A DNA stretch of 64,000 bases from Paragordius varius (lineage: Eukaryota; Animalia; Nematomorpha), in NCBI GenBank assembly GCA_964247055.1, contig OZ176050.1, forward strand, positions 12,710,001 through 12,774,000. The letters are read 5' to 3'. The first letter of the stretch is position 1, and the number at the start of each line of letters is the position of its first letter. A program made the translations under genes and the position numbers. Below, piece after piece: positions 10,601 to 63,100 of the stretch. The notes beneath the pieces were generated by a model, which saw nothing but the letters and a program-made list of their open reading frames with translations, searched no databases and had not been told where the DNA came from.

Positions 10601-13600
10601 ATTACTGAGCCGAATGTAGGATGCACAAAGGGTATATAAATTGTTAATCGATTTTTAATGTGTTGAGTGATTTCAAATGTCATTTAATATTTAATAATAT
10701 TAATTTAAAAACCAATCCAAATTGAATTCCAAAGTTTGTGGTTTTACAAAAATAATTATTGCTTGAATAGGTTCTTTACATGCCTCCAAATGCGAGGCCC
10801 ATGAAGATTGCAATTTTTCGAATTCGCAATGTCTAAACAATACGTGCCACTGTCACCCCGCCTACAATTATATCAATCAAAGTTGTACATTAAGTTAGTA
10901 AATTTTTCTATTTTGATTTTTAATTTTAAGGATTATAATGTGTGTAGTATGATGAAGGTAGATGTAAATTATTTTGAATAAATGATTTTATTTACACTTT
11001 GCTGTTTAAAAAATTTATCTTTACGGAATGAAATACGGTGTATTCCCTGTCGTCCGCTCACATGGTCATCTTTAATCCTTATGAAATATATTGTATAATT
11101 CCCTTAAACATTACCATTGTGTTCGTTTTTTATAAATACATGGTGTAATTGAAATTCACCCTTCAACAATTCAAATTTACCCTAAAAATAAATTATGTGT
11201 CGGGCTAATATCATTATAAAATATATTTACGAATATTTTATTATTTTTTCAGCATTATATTAATTTTAAACAAAATTTTCATATTATAAAAATATTAAAA
11301 AATAAAGATATTTTTTAATATAAAAAAAACGGGTGAATTAGAATTGTTTAAGGGTGAATTTAAACTGTAATTGGTATAGAAGATTGAATGCAATAATAGT
11401 TGAAGTTAATGTAAATCAAGAGTCTCTTTTTCCTTTTTTTCGTAAAGGGTGAGGATTTAAATTATTGTATCAGGACTAGTGAGCACTTACTGCCTGCCTA
11501 GAGCTGACATAAACGATGTAAAAACTCGGTATTTTTGGAATTCTAACTCTAATAAAACGTACACACACACTCAATGTTAGACCCCGGTCACAACCTATTA
11601 ATTTTATAATTATTAATAAATTTTAATCAAGATAATATTCTCTCATTTATTTCAGGGATGTCAAACACCCTTTTTCGGTACGCTGCTCTAAAAAATGCAA
11701 AATAATAAAATTCAATCAAAAATTTACCATTATTTAAAACAGGGGTGTTCAAAACAAATGGCTTCGAGGCCCGCATTCGCAAAATATATCGGAATTTGCA
11801 AATTTTGTATTCGATTTTAAACATAAGACTCTAATAAAAACTATATTTATTTTAACAATTTTCGCTATTTCAATGCCAAAATTTGGAGAGTCTTATTCAG
11901 AAAATTTATTTAAGCAAAACATTTTTACCAAGATATTGTAAAATTTTGCATATGAAATTTCTCTCGGGGGCTGCAAAAATATTTTGAGGAGCCGGTGGGC
12001 CGCGTGTTAGCATGTCATCTGAAATTGGCCTTAAATAAATAAATGAAAAAAAAACAAAGATTATTATCACAACAGCCGCGAAGATATTTGTGTTGGACAT
12101 CCCTGGTTTATATCAAACTCTTTTAGTTTTAGCTCTTTGTTAGATAAATTGTCGTTTTATTACAAAGTTAGCTATTTATTTTTGTAATTTACATTTGAAT
12201 CTAAAGGAACATCCTTTGATGAACCCTGCGAACATGATTGGCAATGCCAATTTATGTCAAAGGAAACAACATGCTTCCGGAATCGTTGTCAATGTCGGCC
12301 TGGATATCATTATGATAATAGATATAAAGATTGCCTTAAGGGTTAAAATATTGATACCTATGTATATATAATACCTAATACGAATTAAATTGTATGAAAA
12401 TGCACCAGATGAATTGATATATATAAAGATAATTTGATAAAACGTAAAAATATAAAGACAACTTTTTTTTCAAAAGACTGCTGTACTGTATTAACTTGTT
12501 TTTTTTTATAAATAACTCATTGTTTTTACTTGCCATATATGAAATAGACATGTGTATTGGTAACACAATCAATTTTATATTTTACAGTAGTGAGTAAATA
12601 ATTAAGAAAAAAAGTTTATAAATAGGGTTGTCTTTTTAAAAAAATATATCTTTATTTTACGTTTTGTCCCTATAATTTCATTTTAGTGTAGCAGTAACAA
12701 TTGAAATTGTACGGACAGAAGGTAAAAATAATACTTTTTTAAACCTTAATTTTCCTATATAAAATGTTTAATCCCAATTTGAAATACATAATTGATTATT
12801 GTTTTACCATTTTACGTGTTTATTCCATACTTTGCAATTTAAAACATTAAGTTATAAAAATTTAAAAAGTACAGCCCCGTCTTTTAAAAAAATAATTTTC
12901 TTTATATTTTAGTATTTTGTCCGTACAATATAAATTTTTACTGTATTTGAATAAAATATTCGTATATTAAATAGGGCCTCTCATTTTTTTCTTTTGCAAG
13001 ATATGGACTGATATAATTTATAGATCGTACATTTGGTCATTACTGTGATAATAAAAAGCAATGCGAAGGCGAGAATATGACTTGTTTATACGCACTCTGC
13101 AATTGTACGCTTGGGACGTTTGTTCAAGACACAAAATGTGTGCCAGGTATGTTTTAGCAGACATTGTTGCCAGCTTTATTTGAAAAAATAATCAAACTGG
13201 AACTGCTTTTGTGTTTTTAACTTAAAAAACGGATTTTCCATAGAACCGGGAATTCATATGGCTTAAGAAAAATATGAATTTTATAAGAAGAAAATATTTT
13301 TAAATAAAATGTTGAATATTATATTTTAATAGATTATTATTCTTAGGGTAACGTAATAAGGCCCATGACATTTTTCTTCTCTATTTATATTTTATTGGTT
13401 ATTCAGAATGTATAAAGCTATTTATTAACTAAATTAACCTGAAATTTAAGCTATAAAAAAATAATTGGCCTGGAAACGAAATAAAGCAAAAAATGACTTG
13501 AAAACATGAAAAACGGATGTTCCGCTATTGAAGACCAAAGGGTTCATTTTAAATTGCAAATTTAATTACAAATCCTTTCTTAGCTTTATAAGACTAATTT

Positions 13601-15121
13601 AGAGTGTGCATTTTAATGGTTGGTTATTACACACCATTATAGTTGGTCAATTTGCAATACACTAGTGTATGAGTAAAATAAAAAATACTTTTCTTACATT
13701 TTGTTTTTATTCATTATTTTGTTGTTTTTTTCATACATGTTGCAAATTGACAACTTTAGTGGAAATAGGCATATTTGCATCTATTTCAGATACATTAAAG
13801 ATAGGATTTAATATATATTTAATCGCGCAAATTTTAATGGATAATTGTGTGCTAAATTGAATCTATATATCTTAAGATAAAGACATATGGATGCAATTTT
13901 ATTAATATTAAGCGGTGAAACATAAATATCTTTTTTGATTCTTTCTGTTATAGGGAGCAATGGTATTAATTGCATTGTCTTAATTAAAAAAACAAGAGCT
14001 CTATGGTAATTCTTATACTTTTTTGATGAATATGATATTGTTAATACCATAGAGCTTTTGTTTTTTTCCATTCTTTACCAATTATTTATACCCATTTAAC
14101 GAAAAAAAAAATTTTGATAAAAAAGGATACATGACTGTAAGAGGTGTGATGGTATAGTAGGTAGAGCGCCGGACTCTTACACAGCCAGTGTTCGAACCCC
14201 GAAACTACGCAATTTTCATCCGGTCATCCCGGGGCAGGCGAGTGTTAAAAGCTTTCACATGCCCAGATACAATTTAAGTCCTTACCCTTTAAATAAAAAA
14301 GAAAACTTTAAATAGTTAACAGGCCAATTTATAAAATGAAATTTTCTAAATTTTTGTCAAAAGACATAAGAACATAATATTTCTAAAAAGGTTTAAGTTT
14401 GGGCCAATCTTGTACAAACGATTATGAATGCAGTACCCTGATTGTTAATAGCATTTGTCTGCCTAATCATACTTGTGGATGTAAACAGGAGTTTCATCCT
14501 GTATCGAATTCCACCTATTGTATCCCAAGTAAATACAGTTTAAGGGAAATAATTTTAATATTTCGTTATTATACCGAATATATAATAGATGAAGAAAATT
14601 TTCAATGCAAAATTCAAATGAATTTTTTATTAAACCCCCAATACTCAGACGAAATCAATCCAGCAGATGTCAAGGATCTTAAATATTTTGAGACATACGT
14701 ATTTAAAATTTATAAAATAGTTTAACAAAAAATATTTAAATGCCCTGAAAGATAATATAGTTTCTTTAAATGCGAATTTTTCGGATAAAACAGTGGATAA
14801 AATTATGATTGATTTTTATTTGAAAAATATGACACCGTCTGTAACAGCGTTGCTCCAAAGCAAAATTTTGGGAAAACGTATGAAATTGTCAAATGGGGAT
14901 GAATTTGCCGTATTAAACGAAACTTTTCAAATCACACCCCTATCTGGTAAAAATTATTAATGTATTTAGGTAATTGTGGAGACGACAACCAAACAAAGGA
15001 AAATCATTTTGTGGGAATACTATTGTGCCTTTTACTATTATTTGCCATAATAATAATCTCAGTTTTGCTACTTATATATAAAAATTATTGGAAAAATAAT
15101 GTTAATTTGATTGAGGAATAA
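1688..15121 (+). CDS. Type I membrane protein: signal peptide, 2 C-type lectin-like domains, 10 EB-like six-cysteine modules, TM, short cytoplasmic tail (~903 aa, 18 exons)
   Basis: Phase-consistent GT-AG exons: 1688-1745, 2556-2719, 3087-3253, 3565-3704, 4252-4415, 5209-5330, 5644-5765, 6174-6320, 6957-7109, 7707-7847, 8815-8934, 9464-9865, 10491-10631, 10771-10893, 12207-12341, 13024-13146, 14391-14528, 14970-15121 (sum 2712 nt). CTLD1 contains CPTDF..GKCL..SCQ..LATP, ERIWIGITDSDELGTF and WELEEPKN..NCLLL..EC..GLC. CTLD2 contains CPFE..SW..AAKIC, YWRIGI and GECLYI..QSCSEKHQLICAK. Modules follow G-x-x-C-x(4-5)-C...C...CxC...C. The last exon encodes VGILLCLLLLFAIIIISVLLLIY then KNYWKNNVNLIEE*. 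Exon 1 is the least certain. Confidence 0.85.
2205..2410. repeat. Imperfect ~110-bp tandem duplication
   Basis: AAATCAATTGAT(TTA/AAA)TTTCGTTTTG(G/T)TTAAAT occurs at ~2255 and ~2364. Confidence 0.5.
4420..4658. mobile_element. MITE family A copy; further degenerate copies at ~10008-10271, ~11147-11378, ~29888-30181, ~37311-37568, ~46391-46646
   Basis: AAATTCACCC / GGGTGAATTT unit arrays in inverted orientation around a shared core. Confidence 0.75.
7950..8244. mobile_element. TA-flanked MITE with ~90-bp TIR
   Basis: TA|CAGTGGATTAAATAAAAGAATATTGTAATAA ... TTATTACAAATATTCTTTTAATTAATCCACTG|TA. Confidence 0.7.
11740..12105. mobile_element. hAT-like MITE; relatives at ~36377-36656, ~41840-42768, and a remnant at ~16560-16592
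   Basis: ~31-bp imperfect TIR CAGGG(G/A)TGT(T/C)CAA(A/C)ACAAAT..CTTCG.GGC with GCGGCCCGC-type subterminal motifs, typical of hAT ends. The 8-bp flanks are not identical. Confidence 0.6.
14143..14290 (+). mobile_element. tRNA-derived SINE-like sequence in intron 16 of the lectin-EB gene
   Basis: Pol III box A (TGGTATAGTAGG, 14150-14161) and box B (GTTCGAACC, 14190-14198). The anticodon and acceptor stems do not pair, and an unrelated GC-richer tail follows. Confidence 0.55.
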
Positions 15122-15166: not shown

Positions 15167-16303
15167 ATGACTTTCATTAAATCATGTGTATCATGCCTCT
15201 TATCGCAACAAAGATCAAAATCGTATCTCTCGAAAGTTTTATTATACAAGAAAAATGGAAATCCTGTTGATGTGTGCCAATTAGATTCGATTCCTGTCAA
15301 TTACAATGGGGAAGCTAACAAAGTTCTTGTTTCAATTTTAGCATCGCCCATTCACCCAGCCGATATAAATAAACTCGAAGGACAGTATCCAAATATTGAA
15401 AAAACACCATTTCCAATAATTGGCGGTACTGAAGGATATGGTCAAGTTATTGCATCCTATGAATCTTGTCCGTTAAAACAAGGGGATAATGTTGTATTTG
15501 TTGGTGGCCATCGATTGGGAACTTGGCGTGATGTTGGTGTATTTGATATCCAAAATCTACATAAAATCCCGTCTCAATACAACCTTTCACCTATTATGGC
15601 GTCGCAACTCATTGTGAATCCACTCACGGCATATTTATTAATCCGCAATTTTGTAGATTTAAAACCAGGATCTAGCCTAATCCAAAATGGGGCAAACAGT
15701 GCTGTAGGTCAATTGGTAATACAATTAGCTCATACATGGAATATTAACACGATTAATATTATACGAGATCGTGAAAGTCCCGAGAAAACGGAACAACTCA
15801 TCGGATTCCTACAGGCTGTTGGAGCCAATTGCGTTTTAACTGAAAGTCAGTTACGATCCAAACTATCGGAGGTTAAAGCCAAATACGGTCCAATAAATTT
15901 GGGGCTTAATTGCGTAGGAGGACAAAATTGTACTGATATGTTGGCTTACCTTATCAATGACTCACCACCTGATTTATCATTATTGGGTTCAACAGTTCAA
16001 TCTCCTACCCTAGTAACATATGGTGGCATGTCCCGTAAACCTGTCATAATTCCAACTAAACAATTTATTTTCTCGAGACTTTGTGCAGTTGGTTTTATTT
16101 TAGATACCACGATAAAGAGTGCCGGGCATAACGCGACACCCTTGCTCTCTGCCATGATTGATGAAATTTGTCGTATGATATCACACGGACACTTATTAAT
16201 GCCAAAATGTAAAACTTTCAAATTGGAAGATTATAAGGATGCTATCAAACATGCCCAAACACCGGCAACGCAAGAGAAAACTATATTTGTAAATGTGCAA
16301 TAA
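15167..16303 (+). CDS. MECR: Mitochondrial enoyl-[ACP] reductase (trans-2-enoyl-CoA reductase, MDR superfamily), intronless
   Basis: 378-aa ORF with MECR/Etr1 motifs: ASPIHPADINKLEGQYP, GGTEGYGQV, GTWR, VNPLTAY, IQNGANSAVGQLVIQLA, LNCVGG, LVTYGGMSRKPV. The N-terminus is basic and Ser/Cys-rich, like a mitochondrial presequence. Confidence 0.93.
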   Translation: MTFIKSCVSCLLSQQRSKSYLSKVLLYKKNGNPVDVCQLDSIPVNYNGEANKVLVSILASPIHPADINKLEGQYPNIEKTPFPIIGGTEGYGQVIASYESCPLKQGDNVVFVGGHRLGTWRDVGVFDIQNLHKIPSQYNLSPIMASQLIVNPLTAYLLIRNFVDLKPGSSLIQNGANSAVGQLVIQLAHTWNINTINIIRDRESPEKTEQLIGFLQAVGANCVLTESQLRSKLSEVKAKYGPINLGLNCVGGQNCTDMLAYLINDSPPDLSLLGSTVQSPTLVTYGGMSRKPVIIPTKQFIFSRLCAVGFILDTTIKSAGHNATPLLSAMIDEICRMISHGHLLMPKCKTFKLEDYKDAIKHAQTPATQEKTIFVNVQ

Positions 16304-37724: not shown

Positions 37725-38264
37725 CACTTCGATTCAAATTGAGGTATCTAAATACCCCTGACTAAATTTTAACTAAGTACTGAAAGAAACGGTTTTAATT
37801 TAAATTTATGCTTCTATCCTAATAAAGTATATAAGTTAGCTAAAATATGTTAAAATTTCGTATCAAAAAAAGTTCCATGTCAAACTACTTCGACGCCATT
37901 TTTATTTTGCAAATTTTTTGCCAAATATCGTGTTCATTTATTTTTTGGTAAAATTAAGGCTAATTTTTATTAAATCAATATTTAACATTGATATAAATAG
38001 AAAAAGTGGTTGATTTTGTATTTTTCAATTTAGCCAATGCACACATGTTACGTTGACTAAATTTTTATCTTTGGGATTCATCTTAAAAAAAGTAATATCA
38101 AGTATTTTTAAAAAAAGTTTTTTATATATTCCGGTTTATTAATGTTATTAAGTGCAAACTTTGCCATGGTTAATTTTTAAATTATATGATTTTAAACAGG
38201 CCTGTGGTATTTAATTACCCCAATTTTAATCGAAGGACTCAAATGAATGTGTTGTATCCAAGTA
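37725..38264 (+). mobile_element. piggyBac-like non-autonomous element (family D)
   Basis: TTAA|CACTTCGATTC ... GTATCCAAGTA|TTAA. Confidence 0.8.
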
Positions 38265-39152
38265 TTAATTCAAATAATTAAATATATTTTTTATCAATTA
38301 AAATTTATATTGCAAAAATATTAGAAGGACACACACGCACATATGAAATATAAATTTTTTTTTGATTTTATAGCTAACACATGTTATACGAAAAATATAA
38401 AATATGATATATTTTTTAAATTTAGATACGAATTAAAAAACGACAAACTACTTAATCGAAAAAGCAGCCACATTATTTTAAACCTATCCACTACAATACA
38501 GTTATTCTAAGTCAATTGAATTCTCCGAAGGATCTCAATTAAAACATTATTCCCCCCTAAATATCCAAATACTAAACAAACATGACTCATCAATACAAAC
38601 TCGTGTATATATATATCCATAAATATTTTTAATCTGACGCGAGATTAAAGGAAAAAACTTTTGAAAAAATCATCAAAAGGGTCAATAATTTATTCATCTC
38701 TTGTTTTTTAGTTTTTGTGTTTTGGGACAAAGGAAATACACAAAACAACAATAAGATAATAACATTTTTTACCATTACACATTTATATAATCTTTGTCAC
38801 CAAAAACGCCACCACGGATATACATTAGCCCTATTCTTTTATTTTACAACCATTATTTTTCCCTAGTTTGAAAAAAAAACTTTCAAAAGAGTTAATTATG
38901 TCAAAATCTTTAATATCTGTTAGTACACTTAAAATGACAACCTATTCATCATTTTGGTTTTTAGAAAACACCATATTTTGCTAAAATAAGTATAGTTAAT
39001 AATTTTGCTGAGATTTGATAAAATGGAAATTTTACCCCATATATCCGTATTATGTTATTCTCATTTATTCCGCTTATTATTGCCATATTTGACGCCACCA
39101 GCCTTATTATACTAATTGTTAAAAATTGGTGAAACAATCACTTGCGAAAACA

Positions 39153-42100
39153 ATGTTGTATCAGACAATAAAAACGGCAAACCTATCACAAAAATATTTC
39201 CTTCTCACATTCATAGCTCTATGCTTTATTCAAATACCATGGACATATTCAAGTAAGATTTTAAAATTATAATATAAAAATGACTCTTAAGCGACTTTAG
39301 GGTTTAGATAGACATTTTTACCATTATATATATATATATATATATTATATATATGAAATGGTTAATAAAGGATGTAATGAGTGGGTCTTTTTTAAATTTA
39401 AACACTTTCAAAAAGTGTGCATGTTATCTAAAAATAGCGCATACATTTTTGCATATGTTTTTTTAAACTTATCCTTTTTTTAAAGCTTGTTTGTATGCAT
39501 ATAGTAAACAAAGCAGTACCAATTTGTTTATTATCATTTAACTTATGTAATGTGCTAATTCACGCTTATTTATTCCACCAATAATAATCATTATTCATTT
39601 TTGACGGCATTCCGCGTTAAAAACAACATTTATATTTATGCCAATATAAAAACTTAAACTTTTTAACAGAGGAAGGGTAAAATCATTGGTTAGCATTATC
39701 AGTATTTTACCTCGCCAATTTTTTATATTCTTCACAATATCCATTTATCTACCTAACTATTCATATTTTTACTACATGCTTTATGTACAACATAAATGTT
39801 AAAATATCATTCATTACAATCCCTCGAGCATTATTTTGCATTCATTTTTTTTTGTTTTTATACTTACAAAAATGCTGCTTGCTAGGCTAATATACATTAT
39901 TTTTATTTACATTGTCTGTTTGTTGTGTTAGGCAGCATATATGAAATGATATACGATATTTACGGTTTTTTATAAATATAAATTCTATTATATGCTCTTA
40001 AACTCATTGTATCATCACCCTTAGTTCGCCTCTCGTATGATTTTCATAAAAAATTCACTGTACATGCATTTTTCAAAATTGTTAACTAATTACTGATTTG
40101 TTTGGCGAAAAAACTTGCCTTCAAAAATGCATAAATTTTGAACTTAGCCAATCAATATATACAGTGTGGTCTGAGCAGATCATATCTGCATGGATCCCCA
40201 TTTAAACCATTCAAATTTGGCTGATGAGAGCCATGGATTAATTGAAAATCTCCAAAACGACGATAAGAATCAAAGTATTGCTGGAAATCATAGCCATATT
40301 CTATACAAATCTGATTCATACACACAACAAAATAATGGTATCAAAGTTAATTTTACTGCTAAAGATAAAAAATCCAATAATTATTCACCCAATAATGGGC
40401 ATCGTTTTCACTTTCGGAACCCCTTTAAAAAGCGTATATTACGACGCCCAACAACACAACTGAAGAAAACTCTTCAACACAATGCCAAATATCAACCCGT
40501 TCAAAACTCAAAGGTTATCATCCATCATAAAACGACATTGCCAACTATTGAACGTAAAAAGCTACCACATAAGTATTGTTACTCCTTGCCTTCGCTTCAT
40601 TCCTCCTACTTTGTCAATAATACCCACATCCCGAGTTTCGATAATTTTGGAGGTTCATTTTATTTACCCATAAGGGAGGAAAAAACACGTAACTTTGCTG
40701 CCAGTCTTGATTTCTTGAGGTTAGCTTTGCTTAAAATTCTCGGTTTTTGTATTCCATACTGCCAAAACTTGTATGAAGAAAAACTTGAATCTGTCTCAAG
40801 TAGCAGTTCGGAAGAATCTTTTATCCAAACAAAACCGGAAAAAGGAAAAACAGGTGATCAGCAGGTTGAGGCAGACGATGATGAATCCTCGATTGATATA
40901 ACTAAACCACCCAAGGATACATGTTTTGATGTACGCGATAAAGCCTTGTGTCTTTCCATATTTGCCATAGTTTGCATTTTACTCCAGCTCCCCATTTTCG
41001 TCTACAAAGTGGGTATTCATAATGCCAACACCGTCAACTCGTCTTTAAACCTATCGACAACAAATAATATTTCTTTTCCTTATAAAAATTATTCGATACT
41101 ACCCATTTGGGCATTTCAAAATCAAACCAAAAATTTTCTGCCACATAACAATAATGTATCATTTAGTTCGGCTTTTAACCCAACCAAATTCCTTAATGCG
41201 AAATCCACGTGAATAAAGCTATTGTGTAGGGGATGATGTTTTCTTTCATGGATTCATTTTTTTGTCAAAACTGTGATAAAGTTTTCGAAAACAAAATATC
41301 GTTTTTTGAAACAAAGTTTCATGTCTCTTCATTCACGAATATTAAAGTGTGGACGACATGGACACCTGCTGTGAAGAATCAATGGCCCCTAAGCCTATTT
41401 TAGCATTTTGACTTTTAAAATTGATTATCTTTACTTAATTATTATGCAAAAAAGATTGTAAAAACCATATATTAACAATTTGAAAACGCACAAAAATATC
41501 GCCACCCTATTTAAAAATCTCATCACCTCTTATTTTTTTGTTCTATCTTTCACTTATTAGTAATTTTATATTTTAATCATTCATAACTTAAGCACACACA
41601 CACCTAAATATTTGCTCACAATCTTCAAAGTCATGCCTTTTTTTATTATTCACATTATATTTACGTTATTACATTTTCTTGTCATATTACTATTAGTCAA
41701 AAACGAAATGCTGCATTCTCCTATTATTATTATTAGAATAGTTTTTAGACAATAAATGTACAGGTATTAAACATAATTACCCTTACGGGTCTTTTTATTA
41801 ATGAATAGAGAAGTTCTGAATTTATAAGGGCTCCAAATCATTAGTGGTTAACATAAATGGCTTCGTGGATTACATTTTCAGCTCAAAAAATGGCGGGCCG
41901 CATAAAAGATAACCAATGGACATTAATAGATATTTTAGTATATCTACAACATGGGACTTTAAAAAATTACGAAAACCTATATGTCTTCTAATTATTTAAT
42001 TTCATTGATTCGGTTTGAAAAAATAGACAAGATTTGCCTACATTTTTAAACATCAATAAGTTTAATTATTTGTTACAAAAAATGAGAATCTAATTATTTT

Positions 42101-45100
42101 TACTAATTTCGTCTATAAATTTGAATGATTATTTTGACCTTAAAAAACTCTTATTTTAAATAATGATATATATTTTTATTTTACTTGATTTTAAATTATT
42201 AACTGATATATTTGTTTTTTTTTTTCAAGTTTTTTCGCGGGTCATAATAATGTTACTCGGAACCTCTGCTTTGAATTTTTTGTCCGCCAATTATACAAGG
42301 CTATAAAATTGAATGTTGTTTTTTTAATTAAAGATAAAACAAAATGCGCTTAGGTATTTAAACTTTAAATTCTCTCAGAAATGAATTATATTCGATTCAA
42401 TTTTACCTTTTCTTCTTTTTATACGCTTTACAATTAATTTTTATATTAATAATGTTTTTACTTTTGATTTTTACTGCATTTGGCCAAGACATGTTCTTTT
42501 ATATCAGGGGCCAAAAACCTACGAAACTTTATGTGCGGCCCTCGAAAAATTTAGAAATTTAAAATTTACAGATATCACAAAATCTAAGGTTGTATTGTTT
42601 CTCAAACACAATTTTTTTGAATAAGTTTTTCCGATATGCAAAATTTATTATAAAAATTTGTTATATCGTGTTTGCATTTTACATTATATTTTACATTAAA
42701 TTATTTATGAAAGCCCTTATATATTATAATGCGGCCCGCGGCGAAGCCATTTGTGTCGGACATCCCAGCTATAAACACTCATTAATTAATTATTTATAAA
42801 ATGGATTTCAAATCTGTTTTCAAGTCTAAAAGATAGATTTTTAATTAATATGTTTGAAAAACTGCGCTTTGTAAAATTATAAGGCTCGTTATTAGTAAAT
42901 AGAGTGTAGGTAAATATACATAAAATTTTCATTAAATATTGCCAGGATAGCATCATATACAAGATCATTATCTTTGATTAAGAGCAGTAAAAATTAAAAA
43001 ATAAATTTTAAGCCAATACTGTTTCTATTTGTTCTATATGCTATTTAGCAATAATTAATGAAAGACTGACAATATATATATATATACTTAGCCAAATTCA
43101 AATTATAAATAATAAAACTGACATCTGCAATCACGCGATGAAACAATATTCTGCAAACATATTCATAAGAGGCGAGCACCTATTTTTATATGCATTAACA
43201 AAAAATCAGACTTTAGAGTTCTAATATTTTCAATAAATATTTTAAAACTGTTAAATAGTGATAATGTCACCCAAAAAATTTAACTATACTAAATTGTATT
43301 TATCTAAGGATATACAGTCAAAAATCACGTTTTAAAACATAGGACATTAATTTTTCAAAATGAAATATATTTAAAAAGACAAAGGTCCTGCCCAGTTATA
43401 GTAATATTCTAATGTTAAACAATGCTTTAGTATTTTTATCAATTATTTTGGTAGTTCGTTTAAGGTATTGCTAAATTATTATAAAAAACTCCAGCATTTG
43501 TTGTTAAAAAATCCATTTTAGAGGTTCTGTGAGTATAATGTTTGAATCGCTCAATATTTATAAATTATATAGAGTATCGATAATTAGATTTTAGTTTAAA
43601 AATTAATACTACCATTCAATTTATATCTAAACTTTAATATATGTAGTTGCCTATAACACTAGACAACAAATTTTAACTTTTTTAACTGCCATTCTTGTGA
43701 ATTTAAAATTTATTTCATTAAAGTACATAATTAGTATATCTGCAACGAAATTTGGTCCTACATGAAAGAATTTTTTTATATTAGAGTTTATCGATAATTT
43801 TTGGCCCCGATTTAACGTTAAACTCGAAATTTCATAAATTTAAAGTTTTAGATATGAAGCCATGTATTTTATATCATTCGAAAGAGCGCAAAAAACTGTT
43901 TTAAATGGTAGTAAGACATTTAAATCAATCGGATGTAAAAGTTATTAGGATTTAAATGGTCGAAATTTTTAATCCTTAAATAAGTCAAGAATTTTCACAG
44001 ACAAATTAATTTGAAAATCATTTAAATTATATTAATATTAATATTAGGGTTATATTAGTATTTAATTTAAAAAAAATGTTTGGAAAAGCTTTTGGTTTGC
44101 TTTTTTAATAAAAATTATTATTATCATAAATAGTTTACCTAGTGGATACTAAAATGCATAGTTGTAACTGTAAATTTATTACATAATGGCAATAAAAGAT
44201 CAAAAATACCTTAAACTTTGTTTTTACCTTTAAATTTTCGAAATTATCAGCCTTGTAAAGAAAATATATTAATATTGATGAGATGGTAATTTTTAAAAAA
44301 CAAAAAACTTAAAAATGGCTGTTTTGAGTGACATAAAAGCAATAAAAAATGTTTTAATAAAAAAAAACTTTCTTGTGTTATCTTTTTTGGACATTCTTCA
44401 CCATCTAAACAAAGTTTGAGCTATTTTCATCCATTAGTTTTAAAAATATAACAATTAAAAAAATGCTCTCGCTTCGCGTGTTTGTCGCTCTTTGTGTCCA
44501 ATATTAACTGTCGATGTAATACATATTAGTATACATTTAATAGAGTTTTTAATACTCTTTCGAATGATATATTACAAATGGGCATTACTTGTATATTTTC
44601 AAAGAAAAACATTTTTTAGTAAAATTTTGATAAAGAGGGCGCATAATCTAAAAAATCAAATTATACAAAATTCTTCCAACGAGTTATAATTTTATTTCAG
44701 ATTTACTGTTAAAATGATATTAAATATCAAAAAATGCAAAAAACTCGAGTGGCAGAAAAATTTGTTGTCTAGTGTAATACAATATGCATTTTAATCGTTC
44801 CTTATTACACACTATAGTAGGGCAATTTGCAACACAGTAGTGTATGGAAAAAACTACAAAATGTTTTTTTCCATACACTACTGTGTTGCAAACCATTAAA
44901 ATGCATACTGTATTTTATATAACGATTTAATTCATTACAATGATATCTAATATGTGGTTACCAATATTAAACAAATATAGACATATCAAAATTTATTTCT
45001 ATTGCATATTTATATTTGATTATTTCTCTTTTAATATACTTTATATTTTAGTTACATCACCACCGAGTTTTATCAAAGAGCCACCCCATGAATTAATATA

Positions 45101-48100
45101 CGATAGCCGAATCCTGGTAACGTTAGAGTGTGTTGCTGAAGGCGAACCGGAACCCAAGTATACTACTATTTCATATTCAAATCTCCCCTTTTCCGCAATT
45201 TACAGTAAAAACTGAAATTATACAGACAACGTAAAAATATAAAGACAAATATTTTTTTCTAAAATACAACCATACTTTTTACATCTATTTCAATATTACT
45301 AACTCATTGTTTTAAATGGCAAAGTGTGAAATAGAGATATAAATTACTAAAACAATCAATTCTATATATTACAATTGTAAATAAATAGCTTATATAGGAA
45401 AAAGTAAGGTATATTAAAAGTTTGGTTGTTTTTTAGATAAAAATATTAGTCTTTACATTTTTACGTTTTGTTCTTATAATTTTAGTTGTTTCTGTATTAT
45501 TTTACAGTTTAATTCAAATTAGTTAGAACTTTAAACTATATGTAACCTAGCAACACGGGCAGTTTTCTTAATCTAAATTCATGCCTTTCCATAATAATAA
45601 AATTAAATTTAAGCCACAGTTTTAGTTTGTAGAAAAAATAAAAATATCCTGTTTTTTTAGTTTACTACGGCTAAAATATAAATTAATCTTTTTATTAAAT
45701 ATAATCAGTAATAGGAAAGAAAGAAAATATAGAACATTTAATGTTACATTATAGAATAAAAAATATTAAGTCAACGATTTGGTCGAATTTTTTTTCTGCC
45801 TGAAAATGTTATATATGGAATCTTTACACTCCATACTTTAATGTATATATTGGATGATTACGTTTGCATCGAAAATTGATACGTTACAAAATATTATAAT
45901 TTAGTAACACATATTATGTTTCTAAATTACAAAATACAACAGCATTATTTTGATTTGCAGATATTATTGGACAAAAAATACGTTAAAATATGATCCCTCA
46001 GCCAATGAAGGCCGTGTCATTATGGTTTCATCGAAAGGAACTTTAACCATCACACGCCCCGTGTATGATGATGAAGGCATATACCAATGTTTTGCAACTA
46101 ATCAATATGGCACGGCGGTTAGTAATGCAGTACGACTCTTGTATGCACGTAAGTGGTTTTTTTAAACTTTAGATTTGGTCTTTTTTATGTATTTGCTATT
46201 AAAGAGATGATGGGTTTTGTCTAAATAATAAAGAGTTATAGTGGTATGATTATAACCAGTGATTTACTAATAAGTTATTACTAAAACATCAACTAATTAA
46301 TCACATAGTGTTTATAATGTATTTATGACAATCCATAAAAAAGTATGAATTTTTAGTTTTGTACCAATATGATATACTACGTAATATACCTACCATTTGC
46401 ACATCACCCTTGAACAATTTAAATCCACTCTAAATTAAATTATGTGTTTTTTGAGATTAAAAATTACCCTAATTTTATAATATTTTTAAAACATAAAATT
46501 CTGTTTAAAATTAATATAATGCTGAAAAATTAATAAACTATGTCGTAAAAATATATTTTATATTAATGATGAGTTATATTATCCCGAACACAATTTATTT
46601 TTAGGGAGAAGAATTTTTTAAGGATGAATTTGAATTATATATGGTATCATTTGCTTATGGTTAATAACGTTTCAAATAATGATCCCTATTCCTTCCATAA
46701 TTGCAATTCAACCAAACTTTAATTTGGAGATTTATAGTTTTATATTTAGACGATTGTAATATATGATTATTAGCTTATGGTGTAATCTGCTTATAATAAA
46801 AAGAAAATAAGGTGTTGTACGTGTAAACAATGTTAGTACTGTAAATTGTTAAAGTGTATATTTTGAATATGATAACCTAATAAACTTGATTGTTCAAGCT
46901 TAACTTTTTAATAAATAAAGGTTTCATTTTAAAAAAATACCCTATCTCAATGTATACACTTGATTGTTGACTCAAAGTATTATTTAAGTTTAGAAAAAAG
47001 TTATGATTAATATAAGGGGGTTTGGAAATGCTTGTATATGCAGTAATCCATGGTCAAACCCAGTCAATTAATTCCTTAAAGGAATTATATGTTATAACCA
47101 AATAAAATCAAAACGAATTTCTCATAATGCCATTGATAGTGTTGATACAACCATATTAAAAATTGACGAAAATACTAAAATAGTTATTAGTTTATTGTTT
47201 CTTATCACCTGGAGAACATATCTAAGACGGTGTAAAATAAAAAAACTCTAAGTATAAACTTATATTTTTAAAATGCTTAATTAATTGGTCTTGGCACATC
47301 GATAAAAATTATTCATACACTTAATTATAAAAGATATAAAGTTTGTTTACTAAGTTAAATATTTTCGCTTTATTTTTTATGTCAAAAATTTTGTGATATG
47401 TAAATATATAACCCTTAATGGTATACTTTTGAGCGTTATTATAGTGTTCTCTATTAAATATATATAAATTTAAATATACCTAATTATTATCAAAATATTT
47501 AGCTTTTTGTTAAAATATTATTTTATTTTTCAAGAATCACGAAATTGCCAAAATATGTGAAAATATCGATTTTATGTCATGTTTAAACAGAATATATAAT
47601 ATACATGCAATATTATCCTATAGTACTCACGCTATTTTTATTATATATGGACCTAAAAAATTATTTTTTAAAGAGGAAAAGGATATATCATACCATTAAT
47701 ATTTTTAAAAGATTCTCCATTCTGTCGTCCTAGTATTATCTAGTCTAATACCTGAAATTTTCATGAAAACAACTACATAATAAACTATATTAGTAATATT
47801 TTAACTTCTATAAAATGATAAACAAAATTTTAACATTACAAACTAATGTGGTATGAAATTTAAAATCAACAACATATAAGTTAATTTTACAGCAAAATAC
47901 GTACTTTTGAAATTTAGTAGTCTAATAACATAGTTGATCATTAATACTGAATTTTTATAAATTAATCATGAATTTTACTCTATACCTAAGGCTGAATAGG
48001 AAATAACATGTTAAAACGGAAAAGGCATATGTGAAACCAATCTTATTGTATATATAACATAAGTTTGTGGTATAGTATTAATTAACAAAGGTAAAAGACC

Positions 48101-51100: not shown

Positions 51101-54100
51101 TAAACAAAATATAAATATTATTTAAGCAATATATCCTTTGTGCTAAATAATGTAAGTATGTCAGTTTGATATATGAATAATAATTTTTAAAACAAATATA
51201 CATGTAAAATATATATGGAAATGGTTATAATGACTCTTGATAAATCAATGTTTGCCAAAATACTTTTTTTTAACATTTATGTTTTAAATGATTCAAAATT
51301 TTATTCACTTAAATACTATATATAGGTTATAGCAGTCATGTATGTTTAAAATTGTAAAACATACGTTTATAATTGATTTTACTTTGTTTTTAATTGTTTA
51401 CAATAAATAGGCTATTATTATTTTAAGGCTTAAAAATGCGCATGTTGAAAATTGACATATCAAACATCATAACAATTAAAAAGAAAAGTAAAATCAAGTA
51501 AAAACGTATGTTTGACAATTCTAAACATACATGACTGTATTTATTTTTATTCACTAAAGTACTGATAATTTGCTTTCCAAATATATTTACAATACCTATT
51601 ATTTTATTTTAGCCGCCCCAAAATGGGAAATTAAACCTGAGAACATAAACGCTGCTGAAGATGAAAATGTCAGTTTTGAGTGTCGAGCCCGTGGAAAACC
51701 CAAACCCCTTATCCAATGGTTTTTTAATGGCGTTCCCATTGCAAGTACAATCATTAAAAAACTTTTTATGGCCAAAATTTATTGACTATTTACGCATTTT
51801 ACAATATGCGTTTGATGGCTATGAAAATTACGTATTAATAATGGCTTAATTTGCTAAAAAGAATATTTTTAACTTTTAGAACTTTTATTAGTACTTATGG
51901 GTTGGTTAATTGACGGTGGATATTGCCATATTGGATATTTTACCTAATATTTTTAGCAACATAAGAAAAAATTACTAGAAGTTATAAATGGTTTTAATGG
52001 ATGTCTAAAAAACCCTTTTTTTTAATTTTGTTTTCTTTATTGCAAAATAATAAGGTTTTTTGAAACATATTTATAAATTTTCAAAATATATTTATATTTT
52101 TGCATCCAAAAAATATTGAAATAGATTTACCCTACAATGAACGGAGAAAGGTGTCAGGTAATGTTATAACCATATCAGCTTTAAAGAAGGATTCAGACAT
52201 TGGTGTTTACCAGTGTAATGCCAGTAATACCCATGGATATATTTATGCTAACGCATATCTTAACATTTTGGGTAGTTTATTACAATTTCATACTTTTTAT
52301 TTAATGAATGATGAAAAATGTTTTTTTTTGCATTTTTGGAAATTTTACCCAATTAATAGGACAACAATAGCGATAAACTACTCTACTAAATTTTGATAAA
52401 GTTTTTACTACATTATTTTTATAACGAATTATACACTGTATTCAATCTTACTAAAATTAATCATATAATAGATATTCATTTCAATTCTAAACGTTTTCTA
52501 TAAAATAGCTTATATCATCATCAGTAAGGCGCCTTAATTATAGAACTTATCGATTGATTTTACTTATAATGTATGTTAGACCATTATTTTTCTTTAATAT
52601 AAATATTTATAGACTGTCACAGAAATGTACTTAAATCAATTAATTAATTAAGAAATTATCAAAATCTTTTTACATATTATTTTATCAATAGTTGTTTATA
52701 TTTAACTACAAATTTAACAGCTGAACCTCCCGTGTTTAAAATGGCCCCTCGAAAGCTCTTAGAGGTGGTAGACTCTGGCCCGGCTAATATAAGTTGTGTC
52801 ACGTTTGGAGCTCCACAACCTCGGGTGACTTGGTTTAAGGATGGCGTCGAAGTTACAGGAGGTCGTTATCAATACTCCGATAAGGGAGTTCCACCCAAAC
52901 AAGCTCAGAATAGACAAGGAATTAACCATGCAGATCAATCAAGTTTGAAGAGATTTTTTGCGTTTTTTTATGTGTTTGAATTTACACATTTAGAAATTGA
53001 AACTATAAAGACTTAGGGCGTAAACAATCAGAAAATAGTATATAAAATTAATCAATCAAAGACTGCTATATTTTTTGAATTATAATTATTTAAATCTTTT
53101 TAGAACATATTTGTAATTTTAGTTTTTATTGCGTTTTTAATAATTTTAATTTTTTTATATATTTATGTATCTGGATTGGATCGACATTGGAAATAAAAAA
53201 TGGAAAATAATTATATGTTTGAAAAAATATTATAATTTTTCATAAAAATGATAATGAGTTTGGTTGTTAAAAATTTGAAAGGACTGTATTAATAAGCGGT
53301 CAAACTGGTTATTGTTTTATTACTAGATAAAAACGCACCAACTATGTACAAATTTTCCTCTCCCATATATTAAATATAAAAACTATATTAACAAATTTTT
53401 ATATACAATCTTAATTTATTTTTTTATCGATATATATATTCAAGATGAGAATTCAAATTCCATAACATCAACCACGCAACGTAGTACGACAGGAAAATTT
53501 TTAATCATTCAAAACGTAGTCCATAGCGATGCAGGGAATTACACGTGTGAAGCGGTAAATAAGTTTGGAAGTGTAAAAGCTAGTGGAATGTTAATTGTAA
53601 AGGGTATAATTTTGAGTTAATAAATAAATCTTTTTTATATTGGTTTAATTTTATTTAAACTTGCATAAATATGCATGTTATAGCTACAGTCTTGAAGCTT
53701 TTATCAACTTAGCATATTATACCCTTTGAAAAAGGTGTACTTATAGATTTTTTTTAAAATCAGTTTGCTTATATTGAAACTCTTATTGAAATTTAAACTA
53801 AATAAAATTTTTTGATTCGACAAATCGAATACCACAAAGTAAAATATTGATAATTCGATATAAAACATAATTATATAATTGTAATTACATATTTTAATAT
53901 ATACGATAGCTCATACCGTTATACAAACTCGTCCACAGAATGGCGAAGTTAGGATCGGGGAACCAGTTGTTTTCCGATGTTCAGCTGTTAGTGATTCCTC
54001 CCTGCCTCTTGAGATTGACTGGGAAAAGAATGGAGAATCCATTTTTTCTACTACAAGTTAGTTTCTACAATTTTTTGTTTTGAAATCTGTGCCGAAAGTT

Positions 54101-57100
54101 AGATAATTTTTTAATTTTAGTTGAAACTGTATATATTTTTGATCTTTTGAAACGTTATATTATTAGTGTTCATTTCGGTATATCCAAAAATTAAATTTAG
54201 CTATTTAGATTATATCGCAAAGTGATACTTTATGAGAATAATTAATTTTTTTATAACTATAAGGGAATATGAATTGTTTTTTCTGGTGTAAGTACTTTTT
54301 TAAATAAAATCAACCCCCTTCTCATCACGACCCAAAATAACTATTATTCATTTTATAATATCATTCTGAAGATATTTAGAATAATTTTTTTTTGTTTTTC
54401 CCTCATTGTATGGTTTTTTGAACCACAAACAGTTTATGTTAAAGTTTAACTTTATCCGATAATACGATCTTTTAGAACGGATCAGTGATATGTTTATATA
54501 AAAATGCTCATATTCTTAAGCCAATTAGCTATCTAAAGGGATTATTTCAATATAAAATGAATAATCTTTAAACCATAGTTGTTATAAATATTATTATATA
54601 TTATTTTATTTGCCACACTAAGGGAGAAAATTTGTAGATTACGATAATTCGGACGGGAGTATGTTAATAGATGATATAACGGATAAACCTGAATATGAAG
54701 ATACCACATCAGATTTAGTTCTCGTGAATGATATTGAATCATCGCTGCATCATTCAAGCAACTCAAACAATAAAAATAATGTGGTGACCAGTACGCATGT
54801 TGATAATCAAAGGTAATTTAATTATTTGTTAAGTTAAAAATTTTAGTTTAATAATGTTTAGAGTGTAATATAGAGTTTGTTCTTTAAATATTATGATAAG
54901 TTTGGTTTAAAAATTTTAATTCTTATACTACGAGCAATTTTAGTTATCAGATAATGAATAATGGCAAAATACAAAATAAAAACCTTATTAATGTTTTCGA
55001 CCCACTTAGTGCACAATTTATATAACAATGTTTTTTTAATGCTGTCCATTTTCAAATATCTTCTAAATAAGCACCCCTTTTACAATTAAAATTCCTACCC
55101 TTAACTTAACAAAACAAATTATTGTAATTATTATAATTGTATATTTTCCCCTTTTAGAGTTTTCAAAAATCCCATTGATAATTCGTTGACAATAACCAAC
55201 ACGCAACAAAGTGACACAGCCTCATATACTTGTGTTGCTCGAACTAGGCTTGATGAAGCCCGAGCCACGGCTAATCTTACTGTTCAAGGTTTTTTATAGA
55301 TTTACTTAATTTATTTTAGCAAATTTTTTGATAGATATTATAGGATTTGTGGCTTTCAAAAGTGATATTATTCATATTACAAATATTTTTTGTCTTATAT
55401 GATCTTGCTTTTCAATGAGTTTATGTAATAAGCCGACTTAATTTCTAAGCAATCAATTGTTGGCTAATATATTTATTGACTTTGTTTTCGTAAGGCTTAA
55501 TTCAATATTAAAGACATATTTATGTTTTTTAAGGCTTTAATAGTTTTAGATAAAACTGTAAACTAATTAATTTAACCTAAATTTTAAGTGGTAATTAAAC
55601 ACAAATTTTACACGATATAAAACCCTTTCAAAGTAATATATTATTATTGTAAATTATATGTGTTTGGTTCACTGGTTAAATTTTTATGGTTAATTTTTTT
55701 TCATAATTTTCAATACATCTTTTAAAAAAATATTTTAACATTGCAAATTATGCATTTTCCAAATATTTTTTTTATAAATTTTTTTCAGGTAAAATATTAT
55801 AAATTTTTGCTTATAGATGTTCCCAATCCACCGACTGATATAACTTTGGTAAGTTGTATGAGTCGATCTGCTACCATAAGTTGGAAACCTAATGGGGATA
55901 ATAGTGCCCCTATACTTCGTTTTTTGGTTCAATACAATGTTTCAAGTCCGTATGTTAGACAACAGATGAATTCAGATACTATGAATCAACAAAATATAAA
56001 CACTAATCGAAATGGTAATGGACGAAGTGGTATAATTATTTAGTATTTTGTTAAAAAATGAAAATCTAAATAAATGTATTTATTATTATTAACAAAATTT
56101 TATTATTGATAATATACAGTAAACATTAGTAAAATAAGGCAAAAAAACCAATGCTTGTAAATTTGGATAGAAAATAAATTTATTAGCAAATTAAGGAGAA
56201 TTTTATAAACAGTTTATTTGAATAGAAAAAATATTATGTATAAATGGGTATTTTTGACATAAGATAAACTCTATATCGATTTCCTGCAATAGATTTATGT
56301 TTATACAGTATAATTAATAGTAACAAAACGATATAAACAATTGAAATTTATAAAACCTAATATAAATTTTTTTCATTTCGATATATTTTAGATATGGCCG
56401 CCTCAGATTTAGATGGTGGTTGGGTGACATATACTAAACCCATCCCTCCGGGCGAAAGACAAACCGTTATACCTCTCAAAGCTAATGCTAATTATACGTT
56501 TCGCGTTCGTGCCGAAAATAAAATAGGTTTGCTATATATATATAAGTAATTCTTGATTTTAAGCGCTTTTTTGGGGCATTTGAATCATTGTTAAAATTAA
56601 GATTACAAATTTAGGAATTAAAACTACATTAAAAGTTTTGGGCAGAGGGCTATAAATACAAGCATTTTTTACAATTACAATTTTATAAATGTACTGCTAA
56701 AACTAAAATTGAGCTTTAAAATTAATTTGAAACATGATGGTATTTAGCGTTAAACAGGGGCAAAACAAATAAATAATTTTTTAAAACTATTCGACATTTT
56801 AATTCTCTTTTAATGGTTATACAGATATAATTGTAATATAATGTGTCATGTCATATAAAAACTTTATTCGCATTGATAAGCTCAAAACTTACTATGAATT
56901 ATTAACTTTAAACCAATTTTTTCGAAAAAAAACTTAACTTTCTATTATTTGAAAAGCAAAAAACTAAAAACATTTCACAAAACAAGTAAAATACCTTATG
57001 ACTTGGTCCATCTTGCACTTTTTTGCATTGATATATATCTTCAACTTATTATGAATTATTAACTTGAAACCATTTTTTTTTTCAACGTAGTAATTTTCAT

Positions 57101-60100: not shown

Positions 60101-63100
60101 AGGACAAAGAACTTAAATTTTAATGTTTTATAGAGGACGTACGAATATAAATTATAAAAACAGGACTTCAAAAGTTAAAGATAATTATTAAGGAAAACCA
60201 TATCTTTCAAACCTTGATTTTTTTAAGAATATATGCGCTGCAAAATAAGGATGAATGATGGAAACTGGAAACTCACTCAATTTAAAATTATATTTTATTG
60301 TTGGAGTCTAACATATTATATATTTGTTAATCATTCTTGCATTTCTATATTACATTCCCAAAAAATTTAATTAAAATACAAAAAGCATGTTATTCTGTCA
60401 TAAAATTCTATAAGGCATATGTTTATAATATATTATATTTACTCAAATGTTATTTCGCTCTTTTTAGCGCCAGAAATGGTGGAAGACTTTAAGGTTTATG
60501 CTTTGGGTTCCAATGCTTTACAATTGAGATGGAAACCTCCGATTGAACCCAATGGTCAATTAACTGGTTACCGAATTTTTTACTCTAAAGGTTTTTTATG
60601 CTTCTTGAATTTTTAAAAGTCAAAATTTTTTATCCTATTAATGTGATTAAATATCATTTTTTTGTTATATATCTATTTATATGTTTTAATATCATTATTA
60701 TAACTTTTATTTTAATATTCTTTTCCACAAAACTTATTTGATATCCATTATACAAATTAACTTTATATGTTTCGTTTAAAAATAGTTTGAGGTTTTAAAA
60801 AGGATAAAAATAAAATATTATAATACTTTAAAATATAATTAGTTGTTGGGACGGACATATTTCCCGAGCAAGAATTAACACCAGTTATAACGGATGCTGG
60901 AAAAATCGAAGCCCGAATCCCGGGACTTCAGGCAGAATCCAAATATCGCGTAACTATTGCGGCCACCACTTCAGCTGGCCTGGGCCAATATGATTGGCGA
61001 GAGGTATAGATTTTAGTTAGTAAATTTATGCAAATTGCTTTCTATTTAAGATTTGGTTAAATTTGAAAATAGGTGAGGGTTTTACGTATGAAAAACTCCA
61101 AAATTATGTATACACATACCATTTACAATTTAATTTCACCCTCAAACAATTCACCCTTGAACAATTCAAATTCACCCTCGAACAATTCAAATTCACTTTC
61201 AAATAAAATATATGTTTTTTGAGATTAAAAATTACCTATATTTTATATATTTTTCAAAAATAAAAATTTTCTTTTAAATAATACTGAAAAAATAATAAAC
61301 TATACCATTAACATATATTTCATATTAATAATAAGTTATATTGGTTCGAAAACACATAATTTATTTTTAGGGTGAATATGAATTGTTTAGAGGTGAATTT
61401 GAATTGTTCGAGGGTAAATTTGAATTGTTCAAGGGTGAATATGAACTGTAATTGGTATACTAAATTTTTAATTAGCTTTAAAGTTCCATAAAATACGCCT
61501 AAAATAATTGATGATATTTATTTTATATAAGTTTTTAATCTTTTAACCATAAGCGATCTTGATAAGTTTAAACTTGGATAAAAAACGTTTAAATTAAGAT
61601 GGCAAACTCTAAAAATGGCATTATATAAAAAAAATATTGTAAATCTTTATAAAACTTTTATTTCTAATTATGTCATACATAAATCTTATTGGTTAATAGA
61701 CATGCTATGTATAGATGCCGTTTAACCAAGTTAATTTTTATTATTATTTCTCAAATATATAGTACATAAGTTTATAAAATAAGGAAAAAATCTCTACAGG
61801 CATTTGTATTTAATTTCTCTTAATTAACTAATATTTTCATATCATAACCAATAATACTTTATTAACCAATTTTTTTTATTCTTATAACTATATGATGTAA
61901 CTATAAACTACTATGTAGGTTAAAACAACCCGAGCTGGACCACCCATGCCCTTTGAATTCACGATAAGCCGGGTCGAAGGTCGACGGGCTAACGTTACTT
62001 GGATGACGAGGGCAGAAAAACTGAGCAAAGCACCATCTTTGCCTCCATTCCATTATCAAAGTGTGGCGGCCGGAGATGGCCAAACTTTATCATCCCCCCA
62101 AGATGGTAATCACTTTTATTCAAGAGTTGAAATGTTTTTCAATACATTTCGTTTTACTTTTTTAACTTTTATTTAGGTTTTTCTTTATAATAAATATGAA
62201 AAATATAACGACAATTAAAGAATAATATTTTTACATTTAAGAATATTATTAAGTTATTTATAAATTATTAGATTTATTGAATATTTCGTCTTACTTTACA
62301 GTTTAATTGAAAGTGTAACTATAAAACTTAAAAATTAATAAGACTAATATTTTTTAGACAGCCATACGTCTTAAATCCTTAATACCTTTAAATATAACCT
62401 ACATCTCTAATTTTTGTCTTGCAACCCAAAACAATGAGTTATATTACAAAAAAATCAAGATCCAAAAATATGCTTGTATTTTACTATAAATGTCTTTTAA
62501 GCTTTACGTAATGTCTGCATAATTTTAATTTTTCTTGCTGCTTTGCTTTTTACTTTACTTTATCTAAACTTATTTGAGTGTTTACAGTATGCATTATAAT
62601 TATTGCTTATTTCACACTATAGTATTGGATAATTTGCAACACAGTAGTGTATGGAAAAAAAGAAAGGAAATCATTGTTTATTCAACACTTTGTTGTTTTT
62701 TTCCATACACTACTGTGAAGCAACCATTAAAATGCATATTGTATGATTTTTAAAAAAAATTTATCTACTAGATTCATTAACCTCAACTTTAACTAATATG
62801 GATGATGTATTATCCAGTAAATCAATGAATGATTCTGTTTATGGGGGTCTGGAAGGACCAGTGGCTTATGTTCAATACCGGGAAAAAGGTATATTAAAAA
62901 ATTAATTTATGCTTTTTTTTCAAAATATTAAATAAATATTATTTAAATTTTAATTCTTTTCGATGTAGGTAAAAAAGAGTATTTTAAGAGTATCCTAATT
63001 ATAAAGCGAAAAAGTTAAAGATAAATGATTGTTATTTTTTAATATAAAGACAATTACAATTTTTGAACCATAGCTTTTAGTAGATAATCTACATAATTAT

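Follow-up and report, generated by a model that had tools for sequence, protein, structure and literature searches.

A probable nested single-exon gene for a membrane protein in an intron of an L1-family adhesion gene of horsehair worms

Does an L1-family cell adhesion gene of a horsehair worm possess two alternative N-termini, or does its first coding intron harbor a second, unrelated gene? The question is raised by a 64,000-nucleotide stretch of the Paragordius varius genome (contig OZ176050.1, positions 12,710,001 to 12,774,000 of the forward strand; this whole stretch is termed the window, and its own numbering is used below), in which a long open reading frame (ORF) at 40190-41212 lies between the leader exon of the L1-family gene and the exons coding for its first immunoglobulin (Ig) domain. 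The original prediction proposed that this ORF might serve as an alternative beginning of the L1 protein, with a nested type II membrane-protein gene as a fallback. Based on comparison with a second horsehair worm we propose that the ORF is probably a separate, nested, single-exon membrane-protein gene, rather than a second N-terminus of L1. The features concerned are the following.

39153-39252, + strand: exon for the leader (predicted signal peptide) of the L1-family gene, comprising 33 codons and one further nucleotide, with a phase-1 donor CAA/GTAAGA
40190-41212, + strand: nested single-exon ORF, 340 residues followed by TGA (stop codon 41210-41212)
40934-41008, + strand: most conserved block of the ORF (residues 249-273), RDK followed by a transmembrane (TM) helix ending in LQLPIFVYK
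41009-41209, + strand: tail following the TM helix (residues 274-340, 66-67 residues), in open frame, not conserved in sequence
41212-41217, + strand: AATAAA, which overlaps the TGA stop and might serve the nested gene as a poly(A) signal
45052-45157, + strand: exon for the first half of Ig1 (Ig1a), with a phase-1 acceptor ttttag/TTACATCA and the 3' flank GTATAC
45961-46148, + strand: exon for the second half of Ig1 (Ig1b), with an I-set/Ig_3 match and 80% amino acid identity to its counterpart in Gordionus

The ORF is far longer than would be expected by chance: its whole open frame, which is preceded by an in-frame TGA 18 nucleotides 5' of the ATG, spans 345 codons, as against a maximum of 123 codons in a control of 21,200 starts from non-coding DNA of the window. 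The local GC content at the ORF is 32.5%, compared with about 25% in its surroundings and about 26% in the window overall, and it is single-copy in its own genome. Every peptide quoted for it in the original prediction was recovered in the translation, as were the six N-x-S/T sequons (at residues 283, 287, 293, 300, 311 and 322) of its 66-residue tail. The product displays a sole hydropathy peak at about residues 251-273, with its maximum at LCLSIFAIVCILLQLPIFV (residues 253-271; Kyte-Doolittle value of 2.73 over 19 residues). The AATAAA at 41212 is weak evidence for an independent 3' end, since this hexamer is common in DNA of 26% GC and the first such hexamer in Gordionus lies 318 nucleotides past the stop codon.

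The single genome used for comparison was that of the nearest sequenced relative, Gordionus montsenyensis (GCA_954871325.2, contig OX940784.2; 26.9% GC), in which positions at the locus are prefixed below with L002. A HMMER search over 1.84 billion representatives recovered one homolog of the ORF, the 220-residue Gordionus protein CAK9297499.1, labelled 'unnamed protein product' (E = 1.2e-4); a pairwise BLASTP comparison of the two gave E = 1e-13 over the TM region. Word-index protein searches, whether begun with the ORF alone or with a profile of the two sequences, found no relative other than this protein, and exact look-ups of the window ORF in a collection of assemblies turned up no record. 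In a MAFFT alignment the two proteins are collinear, with an overall identity of about 33%, and have in common the elements RN..F.K.I.LR, SLP...SY, Y.P., a helix with the pattern LKI..C..C.N.Y, and the block RDK..CL.IFAI.C..LQLPIF.YK. This last block is identical at 18 of its 25 positions (z = 21.8 relative to shuffled sequences), and the N-terminal regions are likewise homologous (z = 5.1; none of 1000 shuffles scored as high). Both proteins thus begin with a disordered region that holds a basic cluster, and continue with a cysteine-containing helix, the RDK motif with the TM helix and a short asparagine-rich tail. The Gordionus protein differs in being 120 residues shorter, lacking the first 50-70 or so residues and the acidic serine-rich linker, and in having a tail of 24 residues as opposed to 66-67 in the window protein.

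Codon counts between the two species gave a proportion of synonymous differences (pS) of 0.88, which is saturated, and a proportion of nonsynonymous differences (pN) of 0.47 overall, the value for the TM block alone being 0.34. The conservation of amino acids in the face of saturated synonymous sites argues that the constraint acts on the protein and not on the DNA. Gordionus appears to be a rather distant relative, since the product of a neighboring MECR-like gene is only 46% identical between the two species and the L1 exons are 51-80% identical. Across the same divergence the two canonical L1 leaders show no mutual similarity (z = -0.6); by contrast, the TM helix of the ORF is conserved far above what a signal sequence or anchor would need. 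A resemblance between the L1 leader and the hydrophobic segment of the ORF, which had been pointed out earlier, did not prove significant, because its local alignment has a z of 0.9 and is equaled or exceeded by 21% of the shuffles that preserve composition; this likeness was accordingly rejected as a mark of duplication. Separately, the window leader and the TM helix of the Gordionus homolog (L002 10511-10585) have a Q-[IL]-P motif in common and align with z = 3.2 (p about 0.007), which, though unexplained, we take as chance after four comparisons.

The position of the ORF is conserved along with its sequence. The corresponding features of the Gordionus locus, as brought out by tblastn with each exon searched singly, are as follows, all on the strand of the host gene.

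L002 1451/1481-1643: leader exon, ending in phase 1 as does that of the window
L002 10001-10663: single-exon ORF homologous to 40190-41212
L002 about 12825-12935: Ig1a exon, with a phase-1 acceptor as in the window
L002 about 15843-16030: Ig1b exon

The identical order of leader, ORF, Ig1a and Ig1b places the ORF inside the first coding intron of each species. The Gordionus leader ends at a phase-1 donor, CCA/GTAAAT; both leaders end in A, and the codon formed at the junction with Ig1 is Ile in each case. In the window the leader exon translates as MLYQTIKTANLSQKYFLLTFIALCFIQIPWTYS, or M-LYQTIKTANLSQKYFLLTFIALCFIQIPWTYS when the initiator methionine is set apart, and is predicted to be a signal peptide with a basic n-region, a 15-residue hydrophobic core and a small-residue end. 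A scan for an ATG followed by a hydrophobic core and a phase-1 GT[AG] returned this exon as the only candidate in 38000-45051, and in a comparable scan of Gordionus no candidate other than the annotated leader had a canonical GTAA donor. Neither these scans nor sensitive tblastn and blastn searches detected any other conserved element in the intron, such as a second exon or an alternative L1 leader. The search for conservation and synteny in a relative, which had been suggested for the ORF, thus yielded a homolog on the same strand of the same L1 intron. The Gordionus annotation treats it as a gene apart, consisting of one exon with an ATG and a stop codon of its own and lying inside a gene for a 1441-residue Ig-domain protein, which favors the fallback of the original prediction. 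We also observed that the annotated start of Gordionus L1 (L002 1451-1643) places an unusually long basic stretch of 30-43 residues before the hydrophobic core; perhaps the start codon has been called wrongly, or this leader is an atypical one.

If the ORF were instead an alternative first coding exon of L1, it would be spliced to the Ig1 acceptor at 45052, either directly from 41013 or from 41209 by way of a 23-nucleotide exon, and the resulting L1 would acquire an N-terminal cytoplasmic domain and a signal-anchor. The donor of the direct path is the following.

41013-41018, + strand: candidate donor TGG/GTATTC, phase 1, compatible with the phase-1 Ig1 acceptor

All the elements required by this proposal exist in the window, namely the phase-1 GT at 41013, the GTGAAT at 41209 and the 23-nucleotide AG...GT segment at 41348-41370, and either path would keep the reading frame. 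An alternative first exon should, however, have a conserved donor, with the sequence beyond it free to decay. In Gordionus no phase-1 GT occurs from the end of the TM helix to the stop codon, though the Ig1 acceptor is of phase 1; the GTs that do follow the TM helix (TACAA/GTTATG and GAGCT/GTATAA) are of phase 2 and would lead to a stop in Ig1 if joined to that acceptor. The route through the mini-exon is not conserved either, as the Gordionus stop codon is without a GT. A phase-1 GT near the TM helix is also expected by chance, since one occurs per about 50 nucleotides of the window ORF (21 listed). Moreover, the window frame remains open for 66 codons beyond the proposed donor (at least 66 open codons by chance: empirical p = 0.012), while the 24-codon tail of Gordionus is uninformative in this respect (chance p = 0.19). 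Donor strength was dropped as a discriminator, because the real donors of the host gene vary (GTAAGT, GTATAC, GTATAA and GTAGTT).

Several observations weigh against a separate gene. An in-frame GT does exist at 41013, and its context GTATTC falls within the range of the real donors of the gene, such as the weak GTATAC at 45158. The tails of the two species cannot be aligned (z = -0.8), and such a lack of conservation would be expected of intron sequence; this dissimilarity, along with the tail of only 24 codons in Gordionus, leaves translation of the tail weakly supported. The Gordionus gene models come from an automatic BRAKER1/2 and TSEBRA annotation that used RNA-seq hints (10.1101/2023.06.26.546503), and the model of the homolog may be an ab initio one; it is no proof of a separate transcript. 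Finally, family, fold and motif searches yield no match pointing to a function: Pfam gave nothing above noise with either the ORF or its Gordionus homolog, a PDB sequence search with the ORF gave no match at E <= 1, and the best ESM Atlas values, 0.81 (an unnamed cluster) and 0.76 (the SLC3A2 N-terminal domain), were both below the usable level. Weighing both sets of evidence, we consider an alternative first exon of L1 quite unlikely: a second L1 N-terminus is arithmetically possible in the window, but the comparison with Gordionus, with no phase-1 donor following its TM helix, does not support it. Slightly more improbable still is a double duty of the ORF in the window species, in which it would specify its own product and also contribute to a minor 41013-45052 transcript for a two-pass L1. 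In a softer version of this idea, the nested TM protein may be functionally coupled to the host L1, and such a coupling would account for the persistence of the nesting across nematomorphs; our survey of the literature on nested genes in neuroglian found nothing relevant.

A different way of linking the ORF to L1 would be through a shared leader. Here the leader exon ending at 39252 would be spliced to a cag acceptor at 40178/40179, and the ORF would be an alternative terminal exon specifying a type I protein with 250 extracellular residues and nothing of L1 other than its signal peptide. In both species an AG compatible with phase 1 is indeed seen in open frame just upstream of the ATG (40177-40178 in the window, L002 9934-9935 in Gordionus), and the N-terminal 250 residues of the window product hold six further sequons, which would fit an extracellular location, although sequon density is about fourfold higher in the tail. 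However, both AGs lack the polypyrimidine tract of real acceptors, and we estimate from base composition that the chance of finding such an AG is about 0.25 for the window, as compared with about 0.75 for Gordionus. From the AG to the ATG the two species encode unrelated peptides, and the charges flanking the TM helix (about +1/+1 in the window protein and +1/-2 in Gordionus) slightly favor a cytoplasmic N-terminus, at least in Gordionus. We hence give this arrangement little credence.

That only one homolog was found might suggest a relic, conserved yet either not expressed or in decay, or else a regulatory DNA element that acts on L1 from within its intron. The two frames, of 340 and 220 codons, have nevertheless stayed intact in AT-rich DNA over a divergence at which the MECR-like proteins retain 46% identity, and the similarity is confined to the coding frame, with the amino acids rather than the synonymous sites being conserved, making such an explanation unlikely. 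A transposon or viral gene, whether domesticated or newly inserted, could be invoked in view of a small palindromic element at 44776-44914, in the same intron. The ORF is, however, single-copy and without a Pfam match, a repeat search revealed no terminal repeats around it, and the synteny with Gordionus excludes insertion at a recent date; we regard an origin of this kind as very improbable.

On our preferred interpretation, that of a nested gene, the locus would produce two separate proteins from the + strand. L1 would be made from the leader exon spliced in phase 1 to Ig1 at 45052, and the intronless gene at 40190-41212 would be independently transcribed from an intronic promoter of its own, its transcripts ending shortly past the stop codon. 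Its product, of about 38 kDa, is predicted to begin with about 250 cytoplasmic and for the most part disordered residues, which would include the basic cluster, the short amphipathic cysteine-containing helix and the acidic serine-rich linker, followed by the one conserved TM helix and a short, fast-evolving tail. An AlphaFold2 model built on the two-sequence alignment (mean predicted local distance difference test score, pLDDT, of 43, which is low confidence) contains just two helices, with the rest disordered; in Gordionus numbering these are the cysteine-containing amphipathic helix at 125-148 and the TM helix at 168-217 (pLDDT about 70-78). A protein predicted to have no signal peptide and a single TM helix near its C-terminus would by default adopt a single-pass topology with the N-terminus in the cytoplasm and the C-terminus outside, and the sequon-rich tail, probably lumenal or extracellular and glycosylated, fits this orientation. 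The pattern of constraint, namely a helix with invariant Cys, Gln and Pro residues and a preceding RDK, is what suggests a function: the protein might work through contacts of its TM helix within the membrane, and not through an enzymatic fold, as would a small subunit with a regulatory or adaptor role in a membrane complex.

The assignment of the host gene to the L1 family likewise comes from its domains. Both exons that the original prediction had placed at its start, the leader with the phase-1 GTAAGA donor and the Ig1 exon from 45052 to 45157 with its phase-1 acceptor, are present as described. The second half of Ig1 aligns positionally with Ig1 of neurofascin (residues 45-110, E = 1.4e-17) and also with contactins. 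Pfam I-set/Ig_3 matches cover the exons at 45950-46162 and 52732-53013, and after the Ig exons come fibronectin type III (FN3) matches above the cut-off at 55741-56040 and 60419-60613. A Bravo_FIGEY domain (PF13882; cytoplasmic and ankyrin-binding) was detected on the + strand at contig positions 12775421-12775612, with 31.7 bits against a cut-off of 23.8. This exon lies 1.4 kb beyond the end of the window and is the sole match to the family in the 110.5-Mb genome; it probably belongs to the same transcript as the Ig and FN3 exons of the window. The presence of Ig and FN3 exons with the only Bravo_FIGEY exon of the genome on the same strand and so close by indicates that the host is an L1-family cell adhesion molecule, and the earlier label 'neuroglian' is thereby borne out as a family name, although the genome belongs with those of horsehair worms and not with those of insects. 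An Rfam search of 38000-46500 gave no match. The palindromic element at 44776-44914, about 140 nucleotides upstream of the Ig1 acceptor, resembles a miniature inverted-repeat transposable element and contains a perfect 28-nucleotide inverted repeat (44826-44853 / 44865-44892) within a longer 24-nucleotide pair.

Upstream of the L1 gene lies the MECR-like gene, which encodes an enoyl reductase with ADH_N and ADH_zinc_N domains.

15167-16303, + strand: MECR-like enoyl reductase, intronless, 378 residues
14399-14725, + strand: cysteine-rich ORF, 108 residues
9469-9891, + strand: cysteine-rich ORF, 140 residues

The Gordionus ortholog, listed under Gordionus sp. m RMFG-2023, is the best match of the MECR-like protein (E = 6e-90), the next-best match having 38% identity. 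It is also intronless and is found on the same chromosome and strand as L1, about 290 kb upstream as compared with about 24 kb in the window; with chromosome, strand and side all being the same, the order and orientation of MECR and L1 are conserved despite a 2.6-fold difference in genome size. The two cysteine-rich ORFs upstream of MECR may be exons of a gene for a secreted cysteine-rich protein; that at 14399-14725 has a sub-threshold match to the EB module (18.3 bits against a cut-off of 24.3).

These observations correct the attractive idea of a two-pass isoform of L1/neuroglian, which is unsupported. In its place they point to a protein family so far known from the horsehair-worm lineage alone, relatives elsewhere being undetectable. 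The TM helix is the part under strongest constraint, and the place of the gene in the first coding intron of L1 has survived deep divergence. For annotators of nematomorph genomes this would be a genuine gene, which ab initio pipelines may merge with L1 or miss altogether, and for biologists it offers a modest lead, namely a conserved pair of host and nested genes in a phylum with very little functional data. The advance is a modest one, since the arrangement is of a known kind and the protein family is an uncharacterized, lineage-restricted one.

The host gene is much like L1CAM, neurofascin, Drosophila neuroglian and C. elegans SAX-7 in its Ig and FN3 exons, its Bravo_FIGEY domain and its leader spliced in phase 1 to Ig1. 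To our knowledge none of the L1-family proteins carries a cytoplasmic extension at its N-terminus, and the present locus offers no sound case for one. The predicted product of the nested gene resembles tail-anchored and type II single-pass proteins in its long cytosolic N-terminus, its single TM helix near the C-terminus and its lack of a signal peptide; it departs from the classical tail-anchored proteins in the greater length of its 66-residue tail in the window species, and it has no sequence kinship to any named family. Nested intronic genes on the same strand as their host are known in Drosophila and mammals, and the host of such a gene must transcribe through it and splice it out. Like these, the gene described here would be a complete small gene within an intron of a large host; unlike them, it would be a lineage-restricted orphan, whose nesting has been maintained across a deep divergence in a little-studied phylum.

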